DNA of 63,069 nucleotides, the filler included, from Reticulomyxa filosa (Eukaryota > Protista > Foraminifera), in the NCBI GenBank assembly GCA_000512085.1. It is 21 parts of 21 records of this genome, joined end to end, with 100 filler letters (N's around TTAATTAATTAA, not from the genome) between each part and the next. Parts side by side here need not be neighbours in the genome. Positions count along the whole stretch, not along the records: positions 28,921 to 38,957 come from ASPP01027723.1; 20 more parts are not named here. One strand, 5' to 3'. This document shows, one piece after another, positions 27,048 through 38,957 of the stretch; positions within the stretch are counted from its first letter, which is position 1, and each line of letters begins with the position of its first letter. The notes beneath the pieces are model-generated. The model worked only from the letters and a program-made list of their open reading frames with translations. It was not told where the DNA came from and made no database searches. The translations under genes were made by a program, and so were the position numbers.

Positions 27048-29223
27048 GTTGTTAATGTTAAGAAACTTTTTTAAAAAAGATGAGGTGGCTTTATCCTTTT
27101 TTGAGAAAACAAAAATATTTTACATTGACATTTTTTATTTGCACATAATTTGAGCAATGAAAATTGAAATACATGAAAGATTGAATTATTGTATCGAGAA
27201 CTTTCAGTGAAAAAATAATACTATTTATCAACTATTGTTTGTGACAATCTTGTATCTTTTTTGAAATAATGAAAGTATCGGAAACACGGATGATGTTCAC
27301 CACTAGTTTTTTGTTCTAAAACTTTTTATAAAGTTATGGAACATTCTGAAAAAAAAAAAAAATTTGGCAAAAAAAANNNNNNNNNNNNNNNNNNNNNNNN
27401 NNNNNNNNNNNNNNNNNNNNTTAATTAATTAANNNNNNNNNNNNNNNNNNNNNNNNNNNNNNNNNNNNNNNNNNNNAGGTGGCATTTTAGGTGTCAACTT
27501 TCTTTTTTATCTTACTGTACGTTCTTATTTAATTTACAAATTTTTTTGATTTTGTCACGTATTTGTTCTTTTTGTCGTTTTTGAATCAATATAGTCTCTT
27601 CGATTGAACAGGCAATGTTATACTTTTGTATATACCTTTTATATTTTGCGATATCTTCTTCACTTCTTTTTTCCCATTTGTTCTTTTTCTTAGAAGCTGA
27701 AGAAATTTTTTGTTGTATTGTGTATGGTGTTGGCACGCTGCTTCTAAATTTGTTCTATCGTTTTTTCTTCAATCTGTAAATTATATATACATTTTTTTTA
27801 ATAATAATATAATATAAAGCGAACCATAATCTTTGCTTTCAATGATAATAAGTTTTTAATATTATCTGTATTAAGTTGGATTTTGTGTAATGATTTTTTC
27901 TTATATTTCATTGAAATTTTTACATTACAATTTTAATGTGATGTACAAATGACTTTGAATGATTATTAGTTTGGTATCTTTTTATCAAAGCAATTATGTA
28001 TACTTTTTTTCTTTAGAATAATATAATTTTGCAAAATTTTTATTTTTTACAAATGTGATTGCTTTGCCTTTCTTGGAAGGGAAAAAAAATACTTATTACG
28101 TGACATAGTTGTACCAAAAGTCGTCTAGAGAAAAAGCACACTACCAAGTGACTGCCAGTAGTGATCTTTGATTTTGGCGTTTCTATTTATTATATCGTGT
28201 GTCATATGTCGCTTTTATCATTAAAAAGTTGCCACTTATATGTTAAATCGTTTACAAAATATTTTTTATAAAAACACATTTATTTTTGTCCTAAATCATT
28301 CTAAATACAGCACCCAAATCAAAGAAAATTTGTATATGAAAAAAATCAAAAAATTCTATCAACAATTGCAATAAAACAAAATTATCGAATATTAGTTTAA
28401 TCGTTTGCTACATTGATTACATTCAAACTTTTTCTCTACATTTTTAGTATAAATGTGTCCGTCATAGTTTGATCTGCTGGTAAACTTAATGAAAAATTTT
28501 TAAAGAAAAAAAATTAACTTGCTGCAATACGTACACACACACGCATCATTTGTATAAGGCTATAAAGCTATGACAGTACTATATTTTCTTTTATTCATTA
28601 AACATAAATATAGTCAAAACATCTATTTTGTCATGATATTATAGTTATCATCGTTAAACTCAAAAGTTATATTTGATAGATTCCAATTTGGATTTTTGTT
28701 CAGCACTTAAAACTTACATACATTGCTCATTTTCAATTTTTTCAATAGATAATCCAATGTGACTTTGAAATTACTTTTTAAAAACAATTGAAAAAACAAA
28801 CACTTAAAATAATCTCAATTNNNNNNNNNNNNNNNNNNNNNNNNNNNNNNNNNNNNNNNNNNNNTTAATTAATTAANNNNNNNNNNNNNNNNNNNNNNNN
28901 NNNNNNNNNNNNNNNNNNNNAAAAAAAAAAAAAAAAAAAAACTGAATGAACTTCACTAGAACTGAGATAACAAATTCGAGTTAATTGTTGTTTTAGTTGA
29001 TTCACAAAAAATCTGGAAAATAATGCACAAATTTTTTTTGTCAATAATGACAATGCATTAGTCTTTTAATTCGAATAACTGCAATTAAAAAATCTATATA
29101 GCCTTTAAAGATATTTAATAATTTTTGTATTAAACAAGTATTGAAATTATTTTTCAAGTCTATTAAATGGCTTTGGATTAATATCTCTGATATCATCTGA
29201 TGATAATTCAATTCCATACTTAA

Positions 29224-29560
29224 TTACAATAATTCTGATATTTGCTGTCTCACAATTTTACTTTTCGAAAATTTGCAATGACCATGCTGTCCAATTGGGC
29301 ATTTTCCATTATTTCCTTTTACATATGTTTCTAAATACTGTCCTCCTATCAAATATGCATACTCTACATTTTCGTGTTCATCACAACATAATTCCATTGT
29401 GTTATTTGTAATTCGTCCGCAAAGATAGCAGAGTAGCGTGTTCATTTTTTTCGAGTCGTTGTCAAAAAAACTCAATCCTTGTTATAGCAACTCGAGAGAA
29501 AAAAGTTTGACTTCTTCTTTTCTTTTTCTGCTTTTTCTTCAGATAATAGTATTAATTTTC
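29224..29560 (-). pseudogene. Degenerate RING/TRAF zinc-finger N-terminus
   Basis: SCYNKD*VFF...LCYLCGRITNNTMELCCDEH...KCPIGQHGHC is homologous to the starts of the genes at ~7998(-) and 34193(+). The conserved Trp codon is TGA and the frame ends early. Confidence 0.7.
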
Positions 29561-29996
29561 CTTTTATGAAATGAAGGGATTTAATATTTATAAAAGGAAT
29601 CGCCGCACACAACAAAAAGTAGTATTTCAAGAAAAAATTATCTATTTTCAATAACAAAATAAATTTGTCCTTCCCACAATACCTTTCTCTGAGAGTTTGT
29701 TGTTTTTAATCGCAAAGAGTAAATAAATACACAACTTTTTCTGAAGTTAGATTTTCTTTCAATATTATCTATTCAAGCTGTTTATAATGGATTATTCGTT
29801 GTTTATATAACAGAATATTACTTCATCTGTTTGCAACAACAGTTAAACAAAATATTTAACGCAACAACTACAAGTCAAACAACAGACCTAAAAAGTTGGA
29901 CAAAAGGACAAGCGAACCAAACTTTTTTCTTATTTGCAAAAATCTATTTGAACAATAAATATTATCTTGATATCCAATTTTCAAGTGTGAAGAGAT

Positions 29997-30881
29997 ATGG
30001 AGAAACGTGTGAATCGACAATTGAAGAAACAATTGGAAGAGCACAAGATATTGGAAGAAGAATTGGAAAAGTTAGAAAACGCAAAGGACCCAAAAGAATC
30101 ATGTGAAGAAGTAATAAAGTTTGTTCAAAATACACCAATGGACCCAATGGTGGACCCAGGTTTGTGATTTTTTTTTTTTTTCTGATAATGATTTTTGGAG
30201 TTCACACAAAAGTATTATAAACTGAACATGCAACATTAAAAAAAAAAAAAAAGAGGCAGAAAGTCCATATAGAGGTCAACCCAACTGTTTCGTTGGTGGA
30301 ACAGAAATATTAGTAAGCAAATCAGGGAAACATAAAAAGATTGAAGAAATGAAAGTAGGTGATGCAATCATATGCTTGGTACCCACGCATGGAGCATTTC
30401 ACGAAAGCGTCGATTGTGACATTAAAGACATACCTAAACATTTGACTGATGCTGTTGTCACAGCTGTTCATAAATCCCTTACTTTTCATATCTGTTCCAT
30501 CCAATATTGCAGTCCATCCAAAGTTTATACATGTATACGTATATTACATATATGTATATGTATATTTTAATTGATGGGTACAATTGTTGGAAATAGAGTG
30601 AGAAAGGTACTATAGAGTGTACAGACAGCCATCCGTTATACGTATACAAAGAGGGGTGGAAAAATGTGAGTGGAGTTGCGAAGCAGCAGTATACGTTTGA
30701 AATTGGCACACTCAAAGTCGGAGATGCACTGTGCTTACAAAGTGGACACTTGGCATACATTACGCACATTCATCGCACGTGCCTCAAAGACCCTGTCACT
30801 GTGTTCAATCTTACTGCCTCCAAAGGGCATACCTTTTTTGCCAATCATATCTTTGTTCATAACAAATGTGTTATTTTATAA
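29997..30881 (+). CDS. G-protein gamma-like subunit fused to a Hint (intein/BIL-like) domain and a C-terminal CaaX box; exons 29997-30159, 30254-30522, 30597-30881 (238 aa)
   Basis: Spliced translation: MEKRVNRQLKKQLEEHKILEEELEKLENAKDPKESCEEVIKFVQNTPMDPMVDPEAESPYRGQPN | CFVGGTEILV...KIEEMKVGD...IECTDSHPLYV...LKVGD...VFNLTASKGHTFFANHIFVHN | KCVIL*. Both introns are GT-AG and in frame. Confidence 0.88.
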
Positions 30882-31538
30882 CACAATACTTGCTTTTTTT
30901 TTTTTTGTCGTTCGTATAATTGGTGAAATAAAACCTAGGATTTTTTTTTTTTTTTAAACTATGCAATAACATTGAGCGTCATCACTATGTGCTGTGTATT
31001 TTGCTTCGAATAGCTTTATTTTTTGGTTTAAAAAAAAAAAGAGCAGGAACAAAGTGATCTTTACCTTGCAATAGATTTATACGTTATTCCTTTGTGTTGG
31101 CCCCCTTTTTAAAAGGAATTCTTCAAAAAAAAACTTGCGAATTTTATATCAATTAATAAAACATACCAAAAGAACAAAGTGAACGTGGTGGAAAGAAAAA
31201 AAGGAGATTTGTTGAATTGAAGTAACTCCAGCTTCTTTTTGTCAGTTCTTCTTTTTAGCTCTGTTTGTTGAATGAATTGTAGATTTAATCCTGGAAGCAT
31301 TACATTATGTGTTGACATTTTGCAAGTATTATTTTTAAAACTGAGTTTTTTTTATTTTTAATCGATAGAATAGAATAAAAATGGTTGTCATCTCAAGATT
31401 TTCTCCTGCGAAGAGATAAAATAAATGAAATTTTGTTTAAATTGGACCTGCACTTATTAGTCAAGCTTTTTTAAAAGAAAGTTTTGCAGTTATTTTTCCT
31501 CCTTTTTTAAAAAAAAAAATTCATTATTAACTAACAAG

Positions 31539-33648
31539 ATGAGTGATCAAATCTTTCAAAGTTTGAATAAACTTCCCACTCCACTTTATAGAGCTCAATG
31601 TGTGTTATACAAACACGAACTCCTCATTTGTGGAGGTGCATATAAAAGAGCTTGCTACTCTTATCATACAATTAAAAATGAATACAAGTTTATATGTGAG
31701 TATCCAGCTGATGTTACATTAGATGGACATTGTGTAGTGAAGCTGACAAATAACAACAATGGAATTACTTTGTTGTCTTTTGGTGGACATTATAAACATA
31801 CATTAATGATGAAATATGTAAGTATTTGGAATAATAAAAATAATTACAATAAATGGATTCCTTTTACTGACAATCAGAATAATCCAATTATCATTGGAAG
31901 AGATAAAGATAGATATGAAGGAGTACGCGCAGTGATTGGTGGAAGTAATAATAACTTGTTATTTATCACTTATTTTAAAAATAATATTAGTATATTTGAT
32001 TTAAATACATTTCAATTTATTAAACATAGCACTTTACAAACTGATAATTGCATCAATTATCATTGCTTTGTATCAAAATCAGAAAATGAGCAAGAAATAA
32101 TGAAAATGAATGAAGAAAAAAAAAAGAAAAATAATAATGAAATGTTGTTATTTTGTAAAAAAACAGGATTATCAATTGAATACAATGAAGATAAAAATAT
32201 TTTTCAATTTTTTAAATTACCTGTTTGTAAAGATATTACATCATTCTATGAGTATGCATAGTGTGTATTAATGGTATTATCTTATTCTTTGGTGGATGGA
32301 ATGGTAGTTTGGGTGATAAATATGTTGTCTCGAAAACAATTTATAAGTATTTAATTCAAGAATATACATGGATTAAATATACACTTACTTTACCTATTCC
32401 ATTACATAATTGTTTTGGGATATTGAATGAAGATAATACTTATATACATGTAATTGGAGGAAATCAGAGTGAAAATACTACAGTATCAATGCATATGAAA
32501 ACAAAGTTGAATCTATGGAGAGATTCTTCACAATTGGTAAGATTTTCTTTTAACTTTTTAAAAACACAAATAAATTGTATACAAAATAATTAATAGTCAA
32601 TAAATGAAATACAATTTATTGTTAAATATTGGACTCGAATTTTAAAGATAAGATTAGGATGGATTGATAATTTTAACAAAACTATTACCAAATATGTTAA
32701 GGAATACCCTTTCACAAAAAAAAAAATTATTGTTTATATATAATCCATGTTTTTAAATAGATAAGAGGTTTGAGATTATTGATGGTTTTACAAACACACA
32801 ACGATGCAGTACGCAATATAACATTTTCTGCAGATGGTCGTAATATGGTTTCGGCATCATATGATAATACTATTCGAATATTAGATGTTTCATCAGGAAA
32901 ACAACTTCAAAATTTTATAGGACATGATAATCGAATATTTGTTGCAAGATTTTCACCAGATGAACATACTATTATTTCATGTTCAAAAGATGACACAATT
33001 CGATTATGGAATATTAATACAGGAACTGAAATAATAGAATTTAAAAAATATTTGAATAATGTATGGGATGTAAACTTTTCACCAGATGGAAAATATATTG
33101 TTGCAGGTTTGGGAGATGGTACAATACGATTATATGATGTAAATTCTGAAATTGAAATAAAACAATTATTAGGACATTCAAAAGGTGTATTGAGTATACA
33201 ATTTTCATCTGATGGTAAAATGATTGTATCATCATCAGTTGATAATACAATTAATCTTTGGAATGTAAAATCTGGTAAAATATTAAAAAAATTTGAAGGA
33301 CATTCTAATTATGTAATGCGTGCAAAATTTTCTCCAGATGATAAATTTATTGTATCATGTTCATGTGATAATACAATTCGAATATGGAATATTGAAACAG
33401 GAATAGAATGGAAAATATTAAAAGGACATTTAGGTATTGTATACGATGTAAAATATTTTCCAGATAGTCAAACAATTATATCATGTTCAGGTGATAGCAC
33501 AATTCGATTATGGAATGTGGAATTAGGAAAGGAAATACAAAAATTTGAAGCATATTCTCGTTGTATGATGTGTGTGGATATTTCTCAAAATGGTAATACA
33601 ATTGCAGTAGGTTCTAGAGACGGTAAAATTCGAATTTGGAGCATATAA
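31539..33648 (+). CDS. Kelch-like repeats + helical exon + WD40 protein (frameshift ~32260)
   Basis: Kelch GG motifs (LLICGG, SFGG, VIGG, FFGG), the 99-nt exon 32597-32695 and seven WD repeats at 32761-33648. Confidence 0.82.
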
Positions 33649-34192
33649 ATTTTTAACATTATGAAGTTTGATACCTTAACAGCTCTTTTTACGAATACAC
33701 ATACATATACAATTTATTCTTATTACGAATTATTGTTGAACAATTAATTGGATCTCTTCTTTTGATTTGTTTAATCACAAATCATAAAAAACAATCAACT
33801 TCCTTTTTTTCTATTTAACTAAAAAAAACTACTTGAAATGAAAAGAATGGAAAAAAGTTATGCGAGAAACAGCAATGTAGAGACCTGAAGATTATGATAT
33901 ACTTGTAGATTACTATAGATAAAAAAAAATGAAACAATAAATGATATTTTTGTCTCAAAGAGAAACAGATATTTGGAAAAAATATTTTCATTTAAAATAT
34001 GCATAAATAAAAAATTTCATTCCTTTTTTATTTGAAAAAAACCAACATACAAGTTTTGTGTTTAATCATTGAAAAACACAAATTAGGTTAAATCTTGTGT
34101 AAAAAGGGTTGACAATTTTTATGCACAGAAACAGTTCAGTTTCAAAAATTCAAATAAATTGAAAAAAGGACAAAAATAATCAACTCAAGATA

Positions 34193-36129
34193 ATGAAACA
34201 AGTAAATGAAAAAAACACAAAAGATGAAATAACTTTGCATTCACTTGAAGACTCCTGCTTTAACAAAGATTGGGTTTTACGGTCATGTCAACAAGAATAT
34301 ATTACACATTTTATTTGTTTGATTTGCAAACAAATTGCAAATAATCCTGTGGAGATAGTGTGTCCACAACACGCAAATATGGATGAATCATTGATTGTTG
34401 GAGAAAATTGTTTAAAACTATTTCTTAAAAACAACAACAACTCTTGTCCAATTCAATCACATGACAACTGTCAGTATTCAAGAAATAATGTTGTACGAAG
34501 ATGTATTGGTGACTTAACAGTAATGTGCATAAGACAATTCGAACAAGAATTAAAGAAATCACATGATACTACATCTGAATTAATTCAATGTAATTTTCAA
34601 GGAAAATTAAAACATTTAAATTCTCATTTAATCAATGAATGTCCTTTACATTTAATTGATTGTTGGTTTAAATCATTTGGTTGTAATCATATCTGTTTCG
34701 ATTATAATTTAAAAAATCATTTAATTACAAATATGAAATTACATTTTGATTTAGTTAATCAATTATTTCAGTCTATGAAACAAGAAATTGAATTGAAAGA
34801 TAATCAAATTAAACAAATGGAAAGAAATTATAAACAAGAGTTACTCAAATATCAAATAGATATTGAAATGATTAAAAAAGATTTCAATCACAAAGAAAAA
34901 CAAATTTTATCTGATTATGAAAAAATAGTTAAAGAATTGGAAGAAAAGAATGATAAATTAACTCGAGATTATGAACAATTAATTCAAAAATTAAATATTG
35001 AACATAAAGAGGAAGAAAAAGAAATTTATAAGCCTTCTATTTCGTTATCATCACCTATTTCTTTTGATTTATTTCGTTCATCATCCAATTAATTAATACA
35101 TTTACTGGACACACTAGCACTGTGTGGAGTATTGATTATTCAATATTTGATGGTGGTCAATTCATTTGTTCTGGGTCAAATGATAACACAGTTCGTGTAT
35201 GGGATGTTAAAAATAACAAGCAAATTCAGTCATTTAATGGACATTCAAATTCTGTGTACGATGTAAAATTTTCACCTTATCATTATTGCAATAATAATCG
35301 TCGTTATGTCATTTGCTCTTCATCATTAGATAAAACAATTTGTTTTTGGGATATCAAAGATAATCAACAATTAAAATTATTAAATGATCACACTCAATGG
35401 GTTGGTGGTATTGAATTTTCACCATTTAATGGTGGTAGATATTTATGTTCTGGATCTGCTGACACTACTATTCGTTTATGGGATGTTGAAACATATAAAT
35501 CATTACATGTTTTCAATGGACATACAAATAATGTTTGGTGTGTTGATATTTCACCATTGCAAAGTAACAATGATAAAAGTAATAGTATTGGTGTGATTGG
35601 TGGTAATGGATATACTATTTGTTCCGGATCATATGATCATACAATTCGAATATGGGATATTGAAACAACTAAACAATTAATTTTGCTCAACGGACATAAA
35701 AATACAGTGTCTGGTGTAAAATATGGACCAAATGAATTAGGAAATACAATATTATCTGGATCATATGATAGTAGTGTTCGTTTATGGGATATTCGATCAG
35801 GTGAACAGATTCAAATGTTCAATGGACGTAAAGATTGGATTTGCGCTATTGAATATTTACCATTTGTAGTAAAAAATATGAAAATTGGTTGTAATGCAAA
35901 TGTAATATGTTTTGGAGAAGATAATACAATCCGTTTTTGGGATATTCGATCAAATAAGAATGAAATATATGTGATTAAAGGTAATCATAAAGAGGATAAC
36001 GGGATAAGATGTCTTAAATTTATGTCATTGAAAAAGAAATCAAAGAATAATGAGAAAACATCAAATGATGCTTGTGGTGCTAATTTATGTTCTGGTTCAA
36101 TTAAAGGACCGATTCGTGTTTGGGGGTAG
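34193..36129 (+). CDS. RING/TRAF zinc finger + coiled coil + WD40 protein, intronless (frameshift ~35088)
   Basis: ICLICKQIANNP...CPQH...CPIQSHDNC and CWFKSFGCNH motifs, then WD repeats. Adding one A at TCCAATTA restores SSKLINTF. Confidence 0.85.
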
Positions 36130-36579
36130 ACTTTTTTTTAATTTTCGTGATTTTGACAAAATTGCATTATGTATTTTACACTTACAAATTATTCAATTTT
36201 GATTTGACCTCTTTTGTTTTTTGATTATTTTTACCCAATTTTTGAGCATATATTGACAGTACATTTTCACAATAAATATATTCCAAAATTTATGTGAATC
36301 ATCAAGATATTGACGATTTGAGTCCAATTTATTCAATCTCAATTTTAAAGCATTTTTTCCAACAATTAACATAATATATTCAATTAATCTTTTCTCATTA
36401 TACACTCTGTTTGCAAATATGGACTTATTTCATTGGCGACAACTGAAAAATTTTTATATTGATAAAAGTGATTACACCTTCATTGGACTTTAAAAAAAAA
36501 GTTCAAATATATATTCATCTTACATCAGCAAAGACTAGCTAAATGAAAAAACAAAATTGAAACAAGGGCCACATTGAGT

Positions 36580-36695
36580 AATGAAATGCAACCAGCATTG
36601 GTAAAGCTACTTGTCTTTGTGTGTTTCTTGATAGTTTTGATATTTATTTATGTTATAGCTCAGCAAAGGGTTCTATTTGTATTTGGGGATATTGG
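36580..36695 (+). pseudogene. Internally deleted WD40 gene remnant
   Basis: First-exon-like MQPAL|GTAAAG lies next to the terminal LCYSSAKGSICIWG motif. Confidence 0.45.
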
Positions 36696-36873
36696 CTAAT
36701 TTATTTTTTTTCAACGAATCAACATGATATATTCAATCATTCATCCATTTTTATTATGTATATTATATTTGCAATATTCTTTAATTTCACACATAAAACG
36801 ATATCATATAAAAAGGAAATAAAACAAGTCCATTTAAAAACAAAATTTCATCAACTTCTTCATTAAAATGTGT

Positions 36874-38230
36874 TCATCCATAAACATAAATTAAACCTGT
36901 GGTTGAACCATAACATAAATTAACGCAATTTAATTTTTGCTCATCGTTATTTACTTGCTTTTTCACTTCCATAAATTTAAGACATCTTACTTCTTCATCT
37001 ACTTTCGCCATATACAATTCATTCTTATTTGATCGAATATCCCAAAAGAGAATTGTTTTATCATATGATCCAGAACATATCACATTTGAATTACCACCAC
37101 TATCATTTATTACAAATGGTGAATATTCAACAGCACATACATAACTTTTATGTTCATTGAACGCTTGAATTTGTTCACTAGATCGAATATCCCACAAACG
37201 AATACTTCTATCCATTGATCCAGATAATATTGTATTTCTTAATTCATTTGATCCATATTTTACACTAGTAATCCAATGTCTGTGTCCTTTGAATACATTC
37301 AATTGCTTGGCAGTTTCAATATCCCATATTTGAATAGTTTTATCATCTGATCCAGAGCAAATACTATATCCACTTCCACCAATCACACCAATATTTTTAC
37401 TTTTATCATTATTGTGATTATTGCTTTGCAATGGTGAAACATCAACACACCAAACACCATCATTATGTCCATTGAAAACATGTAATGATTTTGATGTTTC
37501 AACATCCCATAAACGAATTGTTTTGTCAATAGATCCAGAACACAAATATCTACCACCACTAAATGATGAAAATTCAATACCACAAACACCTTTTGTGTGT
37601 CCATTGAATATTTGTAATTGTTTATTATGTTTGAAATCCCAAAAACGAACGGTATTATCTTCTGATGAAGAGCAAATAACATTTTGACTATTATTATGAT
37701 AATGATATTGTGAAAATCTCACACAATACACAGAATTTGAATGTCCATTAAATGATTGAACTTGTTCGTTGTTATTAAAATCCCATACACGAACTGTTCT
37801 ATCAGATGATCCAGAACAAATGAATTGACCACCGTCAAATGCTAAATAATCAAGGCTTCGTACAATAGTGGTGTGTCCAGTGAATGTATTGAGAAATTTG
37901 AATGATGAACGAAATGTATCAAATATAAAAACAGTATATACCTATATTCAATAAATATTTGAATATTTTTGCTTAATACTAAATGAAAGAAAGAACAAAT
38001 GGACTAACATAATTGACAATGAGTTTGTCAAAATCTTTGATCCATCCTAATTTAATCTTTAATCTTCGAATCCAATACTGAATGATTATTTGGATTTCTT
38101 CTTTTTTCGACTGTCAAACGATAAACAAAAACAAACAACACACAAAAACAAACAATAAAAACATACAGACAACTCGATTTCTGAAAGAAAAAAACTTGAT
38201 CAAAACTTTCATGGCTAAGCTTAAGTTCAT
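36874..38230 (-). CDS. WD40-repeat protein
   Basis: The 102-nt exon 38009-38110 precedes a long WD exon ending LCYGSTTGLIYVYG*. Start codon uncertain. Confidence 0.85.
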
Positions 38231-38620
38231 ACTTTTAACTTTTTATTTACGATACAAGATGAAAAAAAAATTCTTTTGAACTTTTTTTCATTGTCCTTTT
38301 GACCCTTTTTCAATAATACACTTCTTTCTTTTCACGACTAAAGTTTTATCATTTTGTTGTAATTATGTCTATTAAATGTTCATCATAGAAGCGCAATATA
38401 AATTTACTTTGATTTGACAATGAATAAAATACAATAAGGATATTTGTCAGACAATATTTAAACTCGGTTCCAAAAAAAGACAAATTAAAATGCATTTATT
38501 TTTATTTTCCAATTTAAATAATTGCAAACTTCTTTACATTATTTGATAGTCGGTAATTGTGATTAAAAACAAGTTTTTATCACTTCGCAAACATTGTGAA
38601 ATTCAAAAAAACATTTGTGT

Positions 38621-38957
38621 TCATCCCCAAACATTAATTAGACCTTCGGTCAAACCATAAAATAAATTAACTCCGCAATTACCTTTTCTTTTCTTTTTTA
38701 ACATTACAAGTTTAAGACATCGTACTCCAGAATTTTCTTTGATTACATACAATTCATTCTTATTTGATCGAATATCCCAAAAACGAATTGTTTTATCATC
38801 TGATACGGAACATATCACATTTGAACTACTACCAATTTCATTATTATTCGCTATAAATGGTGAATATTCAACAGCATACACAGAATGTGTATGTCCATTG
38901 AACACTTGAATTTGTTGACCAGATCGAATATCCCATAAACGAATACTGAAGTCATTT
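38621..38957 (-). CDS. WD40-repeat protein, 3' end (tandem paralog)
   Basis: IRLWDIRSGQQIQVFNGH...DKTIRFWDIRSNKNELY...INVWG*. Confidence 0.85.

Follow-up and report, generated by a model that had tools for sequence, protein, structure and literature searches.

The foraminifer Reticulomyxa filosa carries a gene whose product probably combines a G-protein gamma-like (G-gamma-like) N-terminal region with a Hint domain and a short C-terminal prenylation signal (CaaX box). The gene is located in record ASPP01027723.1 of assembly GCA_000512085.1, a piece of 10,037 bp that occupies positions 28921-38957 of the window, that is, of the whole 63,069-nucleotide stretch of joined R. filosa sequences that was analyzed and along which all positions are counted. 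A preliminary description had read the locus as a G-gamma subunit interrupted by an intein-like Hint domain just before its CaaX box. Here, we describe the gene and its family, assign the Hint domain to a type, and propose how the domain might process its host protein.

The gene at the locus and its protist family

The gene consists of three exons on the plus strand and is organized as follows.

29997-30159, plus strand: exon 1, with the start codon, the first 54 codons and one nucleotide of the putative G-gamma-like N-terminal region (translation)
Content of exon 1, plus strand: coiled-coil helix, second helix and DPM motif, with a split codon at the 3' end
30160-30259, plus strand: intron 1, GT..AG, 100 nt, phase 1, 24% GC (guanine plus cytosine)
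30260-30285, plus strand: 5' portion of exon 2, end of the N-terminal region, E-SPYRGQPN (translation; alignment A1)
30286-30522, plus strand: remainder of exon 2, N-terminal half of the Hint domain with block A CFVGGTEI; codon of the putative catalytic Cys1 at 30286-30288
30523-30596, plus strand: intron 2, GT..AG, 74 nt, phase 0, 23% GC, within the Hint domain
30597-30863, plus strand: exon 3, C-terminal half of the Hint domain; block B Thr at 30621-30623 and His at 30630-30632
Within 30597-30863, plus strand: block F/G (HTFFANHIFVHN), with the terminal His-Asn at 30858-30863
30864-30881, plus strand: C-terminal tail, with Lys +1 at 30864-30866, the CaaX box CVIL at 30867-30878 and the stop codon

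The coding sequence of 711 nucleotides specifies 236 residues, which comprise a 63-residue N-terminal region (N-part), a 168-residue Hint domain (Cys64 to Asn231) and the tail KCVIL. Translation confirms the three GT-AG-bounded exons and the motif set of the preliminary description, and Cys1 (30286) and His-Asn (30858-30863) lie precisely where it placed them. All of the Hint motifs that it named are present, namely block A with Cys1, the GD motif, T-D-S-H (30621-30632) and block F/G up to His-Asn, followed by KCVIL and the stop codon. Its lengths require revision, since the N-part contains 63 residues rather than 65 and the Hint-less product would contain 68 rather than 70. Its division into exons that coincide with domains (65 residues, 168 residues and KCVIL) also does not stand: intron 1 interrupts the N-part and intron 2 the Hint domain, and exon and domain borders thus do not match.

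Is the three-exon model a real gene? A tblastn search of the piece with two uninterrupted homologues as queries returned exactly three collinear matches in three frames (29997-30155, 30283-30507 and 30597-30878). Exon 1 exhibits 79% identity with residues 1-53 of P0002 and P0153, and the Hint half in exon 2 exhibits 71% identity. Homologous open reading frames (ORFs) run uninterrupted across the intron 1 region, intron 2 contains an in-frame stop codon and a frame change, and the frames of all three exons are intact. The GC content is 37-42% in the exons (37-38% around intron 1), 23-24% in the introns and approximately 27% in the flanks. At least two R. filosa paralogues, L004 (ASPP01028993.1) and L005 (ASPP01018754.1), share both intron positions, with intron 1 after DPMPD(T). 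An additional R. filosa exon 1 (L006) is located at a contig end, and P0004 represents two further partial R. filosa entries. We accept the model because of the collinear matches, the GC contrast between exons and introns, the identically placed paralogue introns and the uninterrupted homologous ORFs. Moreover, the locus is not a chance arrangement, given that the same architecture recurs in at least 20 proteins. Judged from these sequence comparisons, the three-exon model is a real gene and part of a conserved protist family.

The GenBank protein at the locus, ETO05852.1 (P0001; 294 residues, annotated as "YD repeat protein"), has its C-terminal sequence in common with the revised model. It is mis-predicted across 29831-30881, where the upstream region is read in the wrong frame and the Hint domain is partly skipped. 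The GenBank models of the paralogues are wrong as well (P0160, 'YD repeat protein'; P0166, RFI_21520; P0169, RFI_03450). At this locus and at L004, L005 and L006, wrong upstream frames or intron read-through hide the putative G-gamma-like N-part. Several R. filosa models named "YD repeat protein" or "hypothetical" therefore call for correction.

For the family searches, the exons were used separately, and the whole protein was represented by full-length homologues that occur in nature, P0002 among them. An exhaustive HMMER search over 1.84 billion representative proteins with exon 3 as the query identified 437 proteins at E<=0.001. Among the best 150 of these 437 matches, 10 end in His-Asn-Lys, 0-4 residues and a C-terminal CaaL, and a word-based profile search gave more. 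At least 17 full-length homologues of 238-272 residues contain an N-part of approximately 62 residues, a Hint domain from Cys1 through His-Asn, Lys, 0-5 residues and CaaL; this architecture is found in at least 20 proteins overall. The homologue ORFs are uninterrupted and are located on single-gene contigs of approximately 0.9-1.3 kb. These contigs originate from a number of JGI samples and from two SRA runs, and their GC content spans 23 to 54%. One protein, P0159, is identical in six independent samples, and four of those contigs stop near the same 3' position, which would fit transcript-derived contigs.

In 15 aligned full-length members, some of which are only approximately 30% identical, Cys1, the block B Thr and His, His-Asn, Lys +1 and the CaaX Cys are invariant (Cys63, Thr150, His153, His233-Asn234, Lys235 and Cys240 in P0002 numbering). 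The R. filosa copy in ASPP01027723.1 retains every one of them. The position of the Hint domain just before the CaaX box, which had been reported for this gene, is thus found in divergent relatives with invariant catalytic residues. Every family member ends in CaaL, and 5-11 residues follow His-Asn. The tail begins with Lys, often continues with Gly, contains an extra upstream Cys in many members and closes with CaaL. Nonsynonymous divergence (dN) is 0.10-0.30, synonymous divergence (dS) is saturated, and dN/dS is 0.06-0.17 where it can be computed. The alignments indicate that the catalytic residues are under purifying selection. The preliminary description had suggested a search for orthologs with and without the insert, and relatives with the insert were found. 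Profile searches of proteins of 34-108 residues returned no Hint-less close relative and no canonical G-gamma at E<=0.01 or E<=10, a weak negative because the search needs shared five-residue words and short ORFs often remain uncalled as genes.

The type of the Hint domain and its predicted processing

Pfam matches to Hom_end_hint and Hint start at Cys1 in exon 2, and matches to PT-HINT and Intein_splicing in exon 3 reach the last profile positions. Exons 2 and 3 of the R. filosa gene each cover half of the domain, and their Hint-family matches are sub-threshold (PT-HINT 22.5 < 27.7). The expected Hint profile match is consequently missed by the R. filosa exons alone but is borne out by the full-length homologues P0002 and P0025, which pass the PT-HINT threshold. 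An AlphaFold2 model of P0002 has a mean predicted local distance difference test (pLDDT) score of 76, with 78-95 for most of the Hint core. A Foldseek search of the PDB with this model yields 64 Hint matches at E<=0.001. The best match is BIL2 of Tetrahymena thermophila BUBL1 (6y75/6tmm; E 2e-13, template modelling (TM) score 0.86 by target, 28% identity), and the second-best is the Clostridium thermocellum BIL domain (2lwy; TM 0.88 by target). Classic inteins rank after the BIL domains, and Hedgehog structures appear at ranks 31 and 33. In a sequence search of the PDB, BIL2 is the only match (E 5e-8). A tree built by a quick method from 135 related Hint domains places the 21 family domains in one clade with a Shimodaira-Hasegawa-like (SH-like) support of 81. 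The sister group, with a weak support of 35, includes Tetrahymena BUBL domains, and Hint-ubiquitin domains of Nonionella stella are among the nearest rows. A fold search of the ESM Atlas returned generic Hint clusters only and no fusion cluster. Taken together, the profiles and the structural model indicate that the domain is a genuine member of the Hint superfamily. It is, by sequence and predicted structure, of the BIL/BUBL type, with a His-Asn end, no nucleophilic +1 residue and BIL domains as its nearest relatives.

Among solved structures, the BIL domains of Tetrahymena BUBL (6Y75/6TMM) come closest, and by sequence they are the only match in the PDB; Tetrahymena and R. filosa are both eukaryotes of the SAR supergroup. 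BUBL BIL and R. filosa Hint domains share Cys1, TxxH, a terminal (F)FANG..HN motif and the lack of Cys, Ser or Thr at +1. They differ in their surroundings: BUBL presents a ubiquitin-fold N-extein and an array of Hint domains, whereas the R. filosa protein contains a helical, putatively G-gamma-like N-extein of approximately 62 residues and a single Hint domain. Furthermore, the C-extein of the R. filosa family, unlike that of BUBL, is only a Lys-CaaL lipidation peptide of 5-11 residues. The A-type BIL domain of C. thermocellum (2LWY) resembles the R. filosa Hint domain in its His-Asn end and its independence of a +1 nucleophile, and self-cleavage has been reported for the A-type. However, A-type BIL domains reside in variable secreted or surface proteins of bacteria, whereas the R. 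filosa host is a eukaryotic protein, predicted to be a conserved signalling subunit in the cytosol.

Canonical class 1 mini-inteins have the Hint fold, Cys1, block B TxxH, His-Asn and the in-host insertion in common with the R. filosa domain, and excision would in both cases restore a normal-looking product. The R. filosa domain differs by Lys at +1, by the lack of a homing endonuclease and by a host that is not a replication or repair enzyme. We reject a canonical intein. The +1 residue is Lys, not Cys, Ser or Thr, in the R. filosa gene in ASPP01027723.1 and in all 15 full-length relatives, and the transesterification step is therefore impossible. The 'intein-like' splicing of the preliminary description is thus excluded as far as the classic mechanism is concerned. 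Hedgehog proteins offer a different parallel, since their Hog domain also adopts the Hint fold and uses thioester chemistry to set the lipid status of an N-terminal signalling part, as is predicted for R. filosa. Unlike the R. filosa Hint domain, which terminates in His-Asn with nothing but K-CaaL after it, the Hog domain lacks a terminal His-Asn and includes a sterol-recognition region. A Hedgehog/Hog domain is therefore rejected on account of the His-Asn terminus, the missing sterol-recognition region and the mere 5-11 residues that follow.

The searches also returned observations on related Hint domains. In these Hint domains, the match to the AXH model of Pfam (ataxin-1/HBP1 module, PF08517) starts immediately after Cys1 and extends over the first two thirds of the domain. 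Its gathering score is exceeded in the homologues P0002, P0010 and P0069 (up to 49.6 bits), the R. filosa region concerned is 30597-30878, and ESM Atlas clusters co-annotate AXH with Hint families. These matches suggest that the AXH profile cross-matches the Hint fold or is related to it. A polyubiquitin of the foraminifer N. stella (P0011, EukProt) has related Hint domains in alternation with its ubiquitin units, and HN is followed by S/A-MQIFVKT. This arrangement is of the BUBL type (compare P0029 and P0042, Tetrahymena BUBL1), which has so far been discussed for ciliates. In many related proteins, 3-6 Hint domains follow one another in tandem, each connected to the next in head-to-tail fashion by a K-G-(G) linker (...VHNKGGCF...). 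These Hint-only arrays include P0005-P0009, P0014-P0020 and others, with Mucilaginibacter, a Flavobacteriales metagenome-assembled genome (MAG) and a Nanoarchaeota MAG as named sources.

What would a BIL/BUBL-type Hint domain do in front of a CaaX box? We tentatively propose, from sequence and by analogy with known BIL domains, that a G-gamma-like subunit harbors the Hint domain between its NPF-like motif and K-CaaL and that predicted self-processing joins the subunit to its anchor, a reading that we regard as plausible but still short of probable. CaaX boxes that end in Leu are substrates of GGTase-I. The precursor would be geranylgeranylated by this enzyme at the CaaL cysteine. Cys64, the Cys1 of the Hint domain, would convert the Asn63-Cys64 peptide bond into a thioester, and Asn231 of the terminal His-Asn would cyclise to free the Hint domain from the tail. 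The G-gamma carbonyl would be captured by an amine of Lys232, either the epsilon-amine, as in BUBL BIL2, or the new alpha-amine. Either route would generate a lipid-anchored G-gamma of approximately 68 residues and a free Hint domain of approximately 19 kDa, and the anchor would be attached to the subunit only via self-processing.

Each amine route has been reported or proposed for a BIL domain. For the alpha-amine, Dassa et al. (2004; J Biol Chem 279:32001) reportedly describe, going by the title of their paper, BIL domain splicing without a C'-flanking nucleophile, and they are said to have proposed aminolysis by the alpha-amine that arises from Asn cyclisation in the C. thermocellum BIL domain. 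For the epsilon-amine, BIL2 forms an isopeptide bond between the C-terminus of its N-extein and a lysine of its C-extein without ATP (PMC8616854). It is conceivable, although doubtful, that the R. filosa Hint domain likewise links the G-gamma-like C-terminus to the Lys epsilon-amine of an already geranylgeranylated K-CaaL; by analogy, this would create a branched lipid anchor and amount to a natural 'expressed protein ligation'. The ligation step could be conditional because the related BIL2 is Zn-responsive, and membrane attachment of G-beta-gamma could thus constitute a regulated one-way switch in foraminifera.

Two observations weigh against the proposed ligation. The +1 residue is basic throughout the wider Hint subfamily, including prokaryotic tandem arrays (89 Lys and 20 Arg among 128 domains); therefore, Lys +1 need not be a nucleophile and may serve Asn cyclisation. 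In addition, A-type BIL domains cleave and cannot ligate according to a review (PMC7765530). Both points would suit cleavage or transfer without re-ligation, in which the CaaL anchor stays with the Hint domain rather than with the mature subunit and the prenylated Hint domain acts as a membrane-bound dispenser. The thioester would then be hydrolysed to release a lipid-free, soluble G-gamma or G-beta-gamma, or it would be attacked by a foreign amine or hydroxyl; the attacking group could belong to a lysine on a different protein, the situation in BUBL, or to a lipid or sterol, the situation in Hedgehog. The conserved Cys1, TxxH and His-Asn and the Arg at +1 of related domains are in line with such an outcome. 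However, Lys +1 is strictly invariant in the family even though the rest of the tail varies, and the tail has no sterol-recognition region. Moreover, the searches of proteins of 34-108 residues, a size at which ORFs often go uncalled, revealed no Hint-less close relative that could supply an anchored G-gamma. We thus regard cleavage or transfer without re-ligation as unlikely, but as the strongest competitor of the anchor-joining model.

The identity of the N-terminal region

In G-gamma subunits, two helices precede an extended stretch. The AlphaFold2 model of P0002 contains helices at residues 2-28 and 32-45 and then an extended stretch. The R. filosa protein presents a 63-residue N-part with two helices, DPM, NPF/SPY and a KCVIL tail, and its SPY aligns with the NPF of relatives. 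The tails of the family resemble G-gamma tails such as ...KGGCVIS. G-gamma subunits (PF00631, GGL) thus resemble the R. filosa protein in their approximately 65 residues, coiled-coil and second helix, DP(L/M), NP(F) and C-terminal CaaL, but differ in that the R. filosa protein scores below the Pfam threshold and contains a 168-residue Hint domain ahead of the CaaX box.

PF00631 is the top Pfam match for exon 1 (E 8e-4, 19.8 bits) and also for P0155 (E 0.004). It is detected in the N-parts of 8 of the 16 relatives (E 0.004-10), always in the same register (profile positions 5-59). The G-gamma identity asserted at the outset therefore holds insofar as PF00631 ranks first for exon 1, and falls short insofar as its score does not reach the gathering score (19.8 vs 27.1 bits). 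In searches of the PDB, the family profile A5 matches G-gamma-T1 at E 0.18 and profile A2 at E 0.59, in both cases behind SRN2. The A5 alignment with G-gamma-T1 is collinear across the coiled coil, the Cys-x-Glu-Val helix, DPL/DPM and NPF. The G-gamma match is lost with profile A3, which contains the C-terminal half alone, and a phmmer search of the PDB with exon 1 returned coiled-coil noise only. A feature search of the ESM Atlas with residues 1-62 of P0002 gave no usable match.

Several of these results count against a G-gamma identity. Every PF00631 match is below the gathering threshold, the most divergent subfamilies (P0025, P0069 and P0164) have no PF00631 match, and coiled-coil proteins equal the score of G-gamma in the PDB search. 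Could the N-part instead be an unrelated coiled-coil cargo on a BUBL-like conjugation module, with an incidental prenylation signal? The coiled-coil families DivIC, Mis12 and SRN2 score in the range of G-gamma, and the profile search of short proteins gave no G-gamma. However, PF00631 is matched in a constant register and ranks first for two members, and no other family explains the combination of DP(M/L), NP(F/W/Y), approximately 62 residues, two helices and a CaaL end, which together make up the G-gamma layout. An unrelated cargo is accordingly improbable, somewhat more so than processing without re-ligation. Sequence profiles and the structural model make it likely that the N-part is G-gamma-like, and a G-beta partner would then be expected.

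A G-gamma-like subunit could also carry a Hint domain that no longer processes, in which case the full 236-residue protein would function as a G-gamma whose anchor is preceded by a globular spacer. The precursor keeps its CaaL tail whether it is processed or not, as such a protein would. However, the residues for the N-S acyl shift and Asn cyclisation, which a spacer would not need, are invariant across members that are approximately 30% identical and are under purifying selection, and an inert spacer is thus very unlikely. An artefact of assembly or annotation, or a pseudogene, is hardly credible: the R. filosa assembly is highly fragmented (PMC5784254) and the GenBank models of the locus and its paralogues are wrong, but the frames of the three exons are intact, the paralogue introns share their positions, and many uninterrupted homologues occur in independent samples.

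Neighboring genes and biological implications

The G-gamma-like gene is followed by a Kelch-like gene in two ORFs (31539-32593) and by a seven-blade WD40 gene (32770-33648). Kelch and WD40 genes also adjoin the paralogue L004 (positions 42-2448 of L004), in a different orientation relative to the paralogue, and a segmental duplication may account for the shared neighborhood. The piece contains three more WD40 ORFs, all of a single repeated type, at 34193-36129, 36874-37731 (minus strand) and 38621-38905 (minus strand). Upstream of the WD40 ORF at 35122-36129 is an ORF with a weak match to a TRAF-type zinc finger (E 8e-4, below threshold), and the two are probably one gene with an intron. We considered these WD40 ORFs as candidates for G-beta and rejected them, given that their WD40_Gbeta scores are below the cut-off; they are generic WD40 proteins. 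Just upstream of the G-gamma-like gene, on the opposite strand, is an 83-residue Cys/His-rich ORF with no Pfam match (29224-29475, minus strand), which may belong, as one exon, to a larger gene that the edge of the piece truncates.

The known tasks of Hint domains are the splicing of housekeeping enzymes, the cholesterylation of Hedgehog, the release of bacterial toxins and, in ciliates, the conjugation of ubiquitin-like domains. Our full-text literature search retrieved no paper that joins a G-gamma with a Hint or intein domain and none on inteins in Reticulomyxa, in keeping with the initial statement that a Hint-containing G-gamma had not been described. The position of the domain between a G-gamma-like subunit and a prenylation signal is new; the domain itself joins the known BIL/BUBL kind. 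A Hint domain between a heterotrimeric G-gamma-like subunit and its prenylation signal would represent a new use of this fold, and the arrangement is kept with intact catalytic residues in many protist genes.

Every G-beta-gamma dimer requires a lipid anchor. If the Hint domain processes its host, self-processing of the protein, and not lipidation enzymes alone, would decide whether the lipid anchor of G-beta-gamma is attached or detached, and G-protein signalling would have a control point of a kind not seen before. The lysine ligation of BIL-type domains would then reach past ubiquitin-like cargo, and the family would provide a compact natural module that attaches lipidated peptides to proteins.

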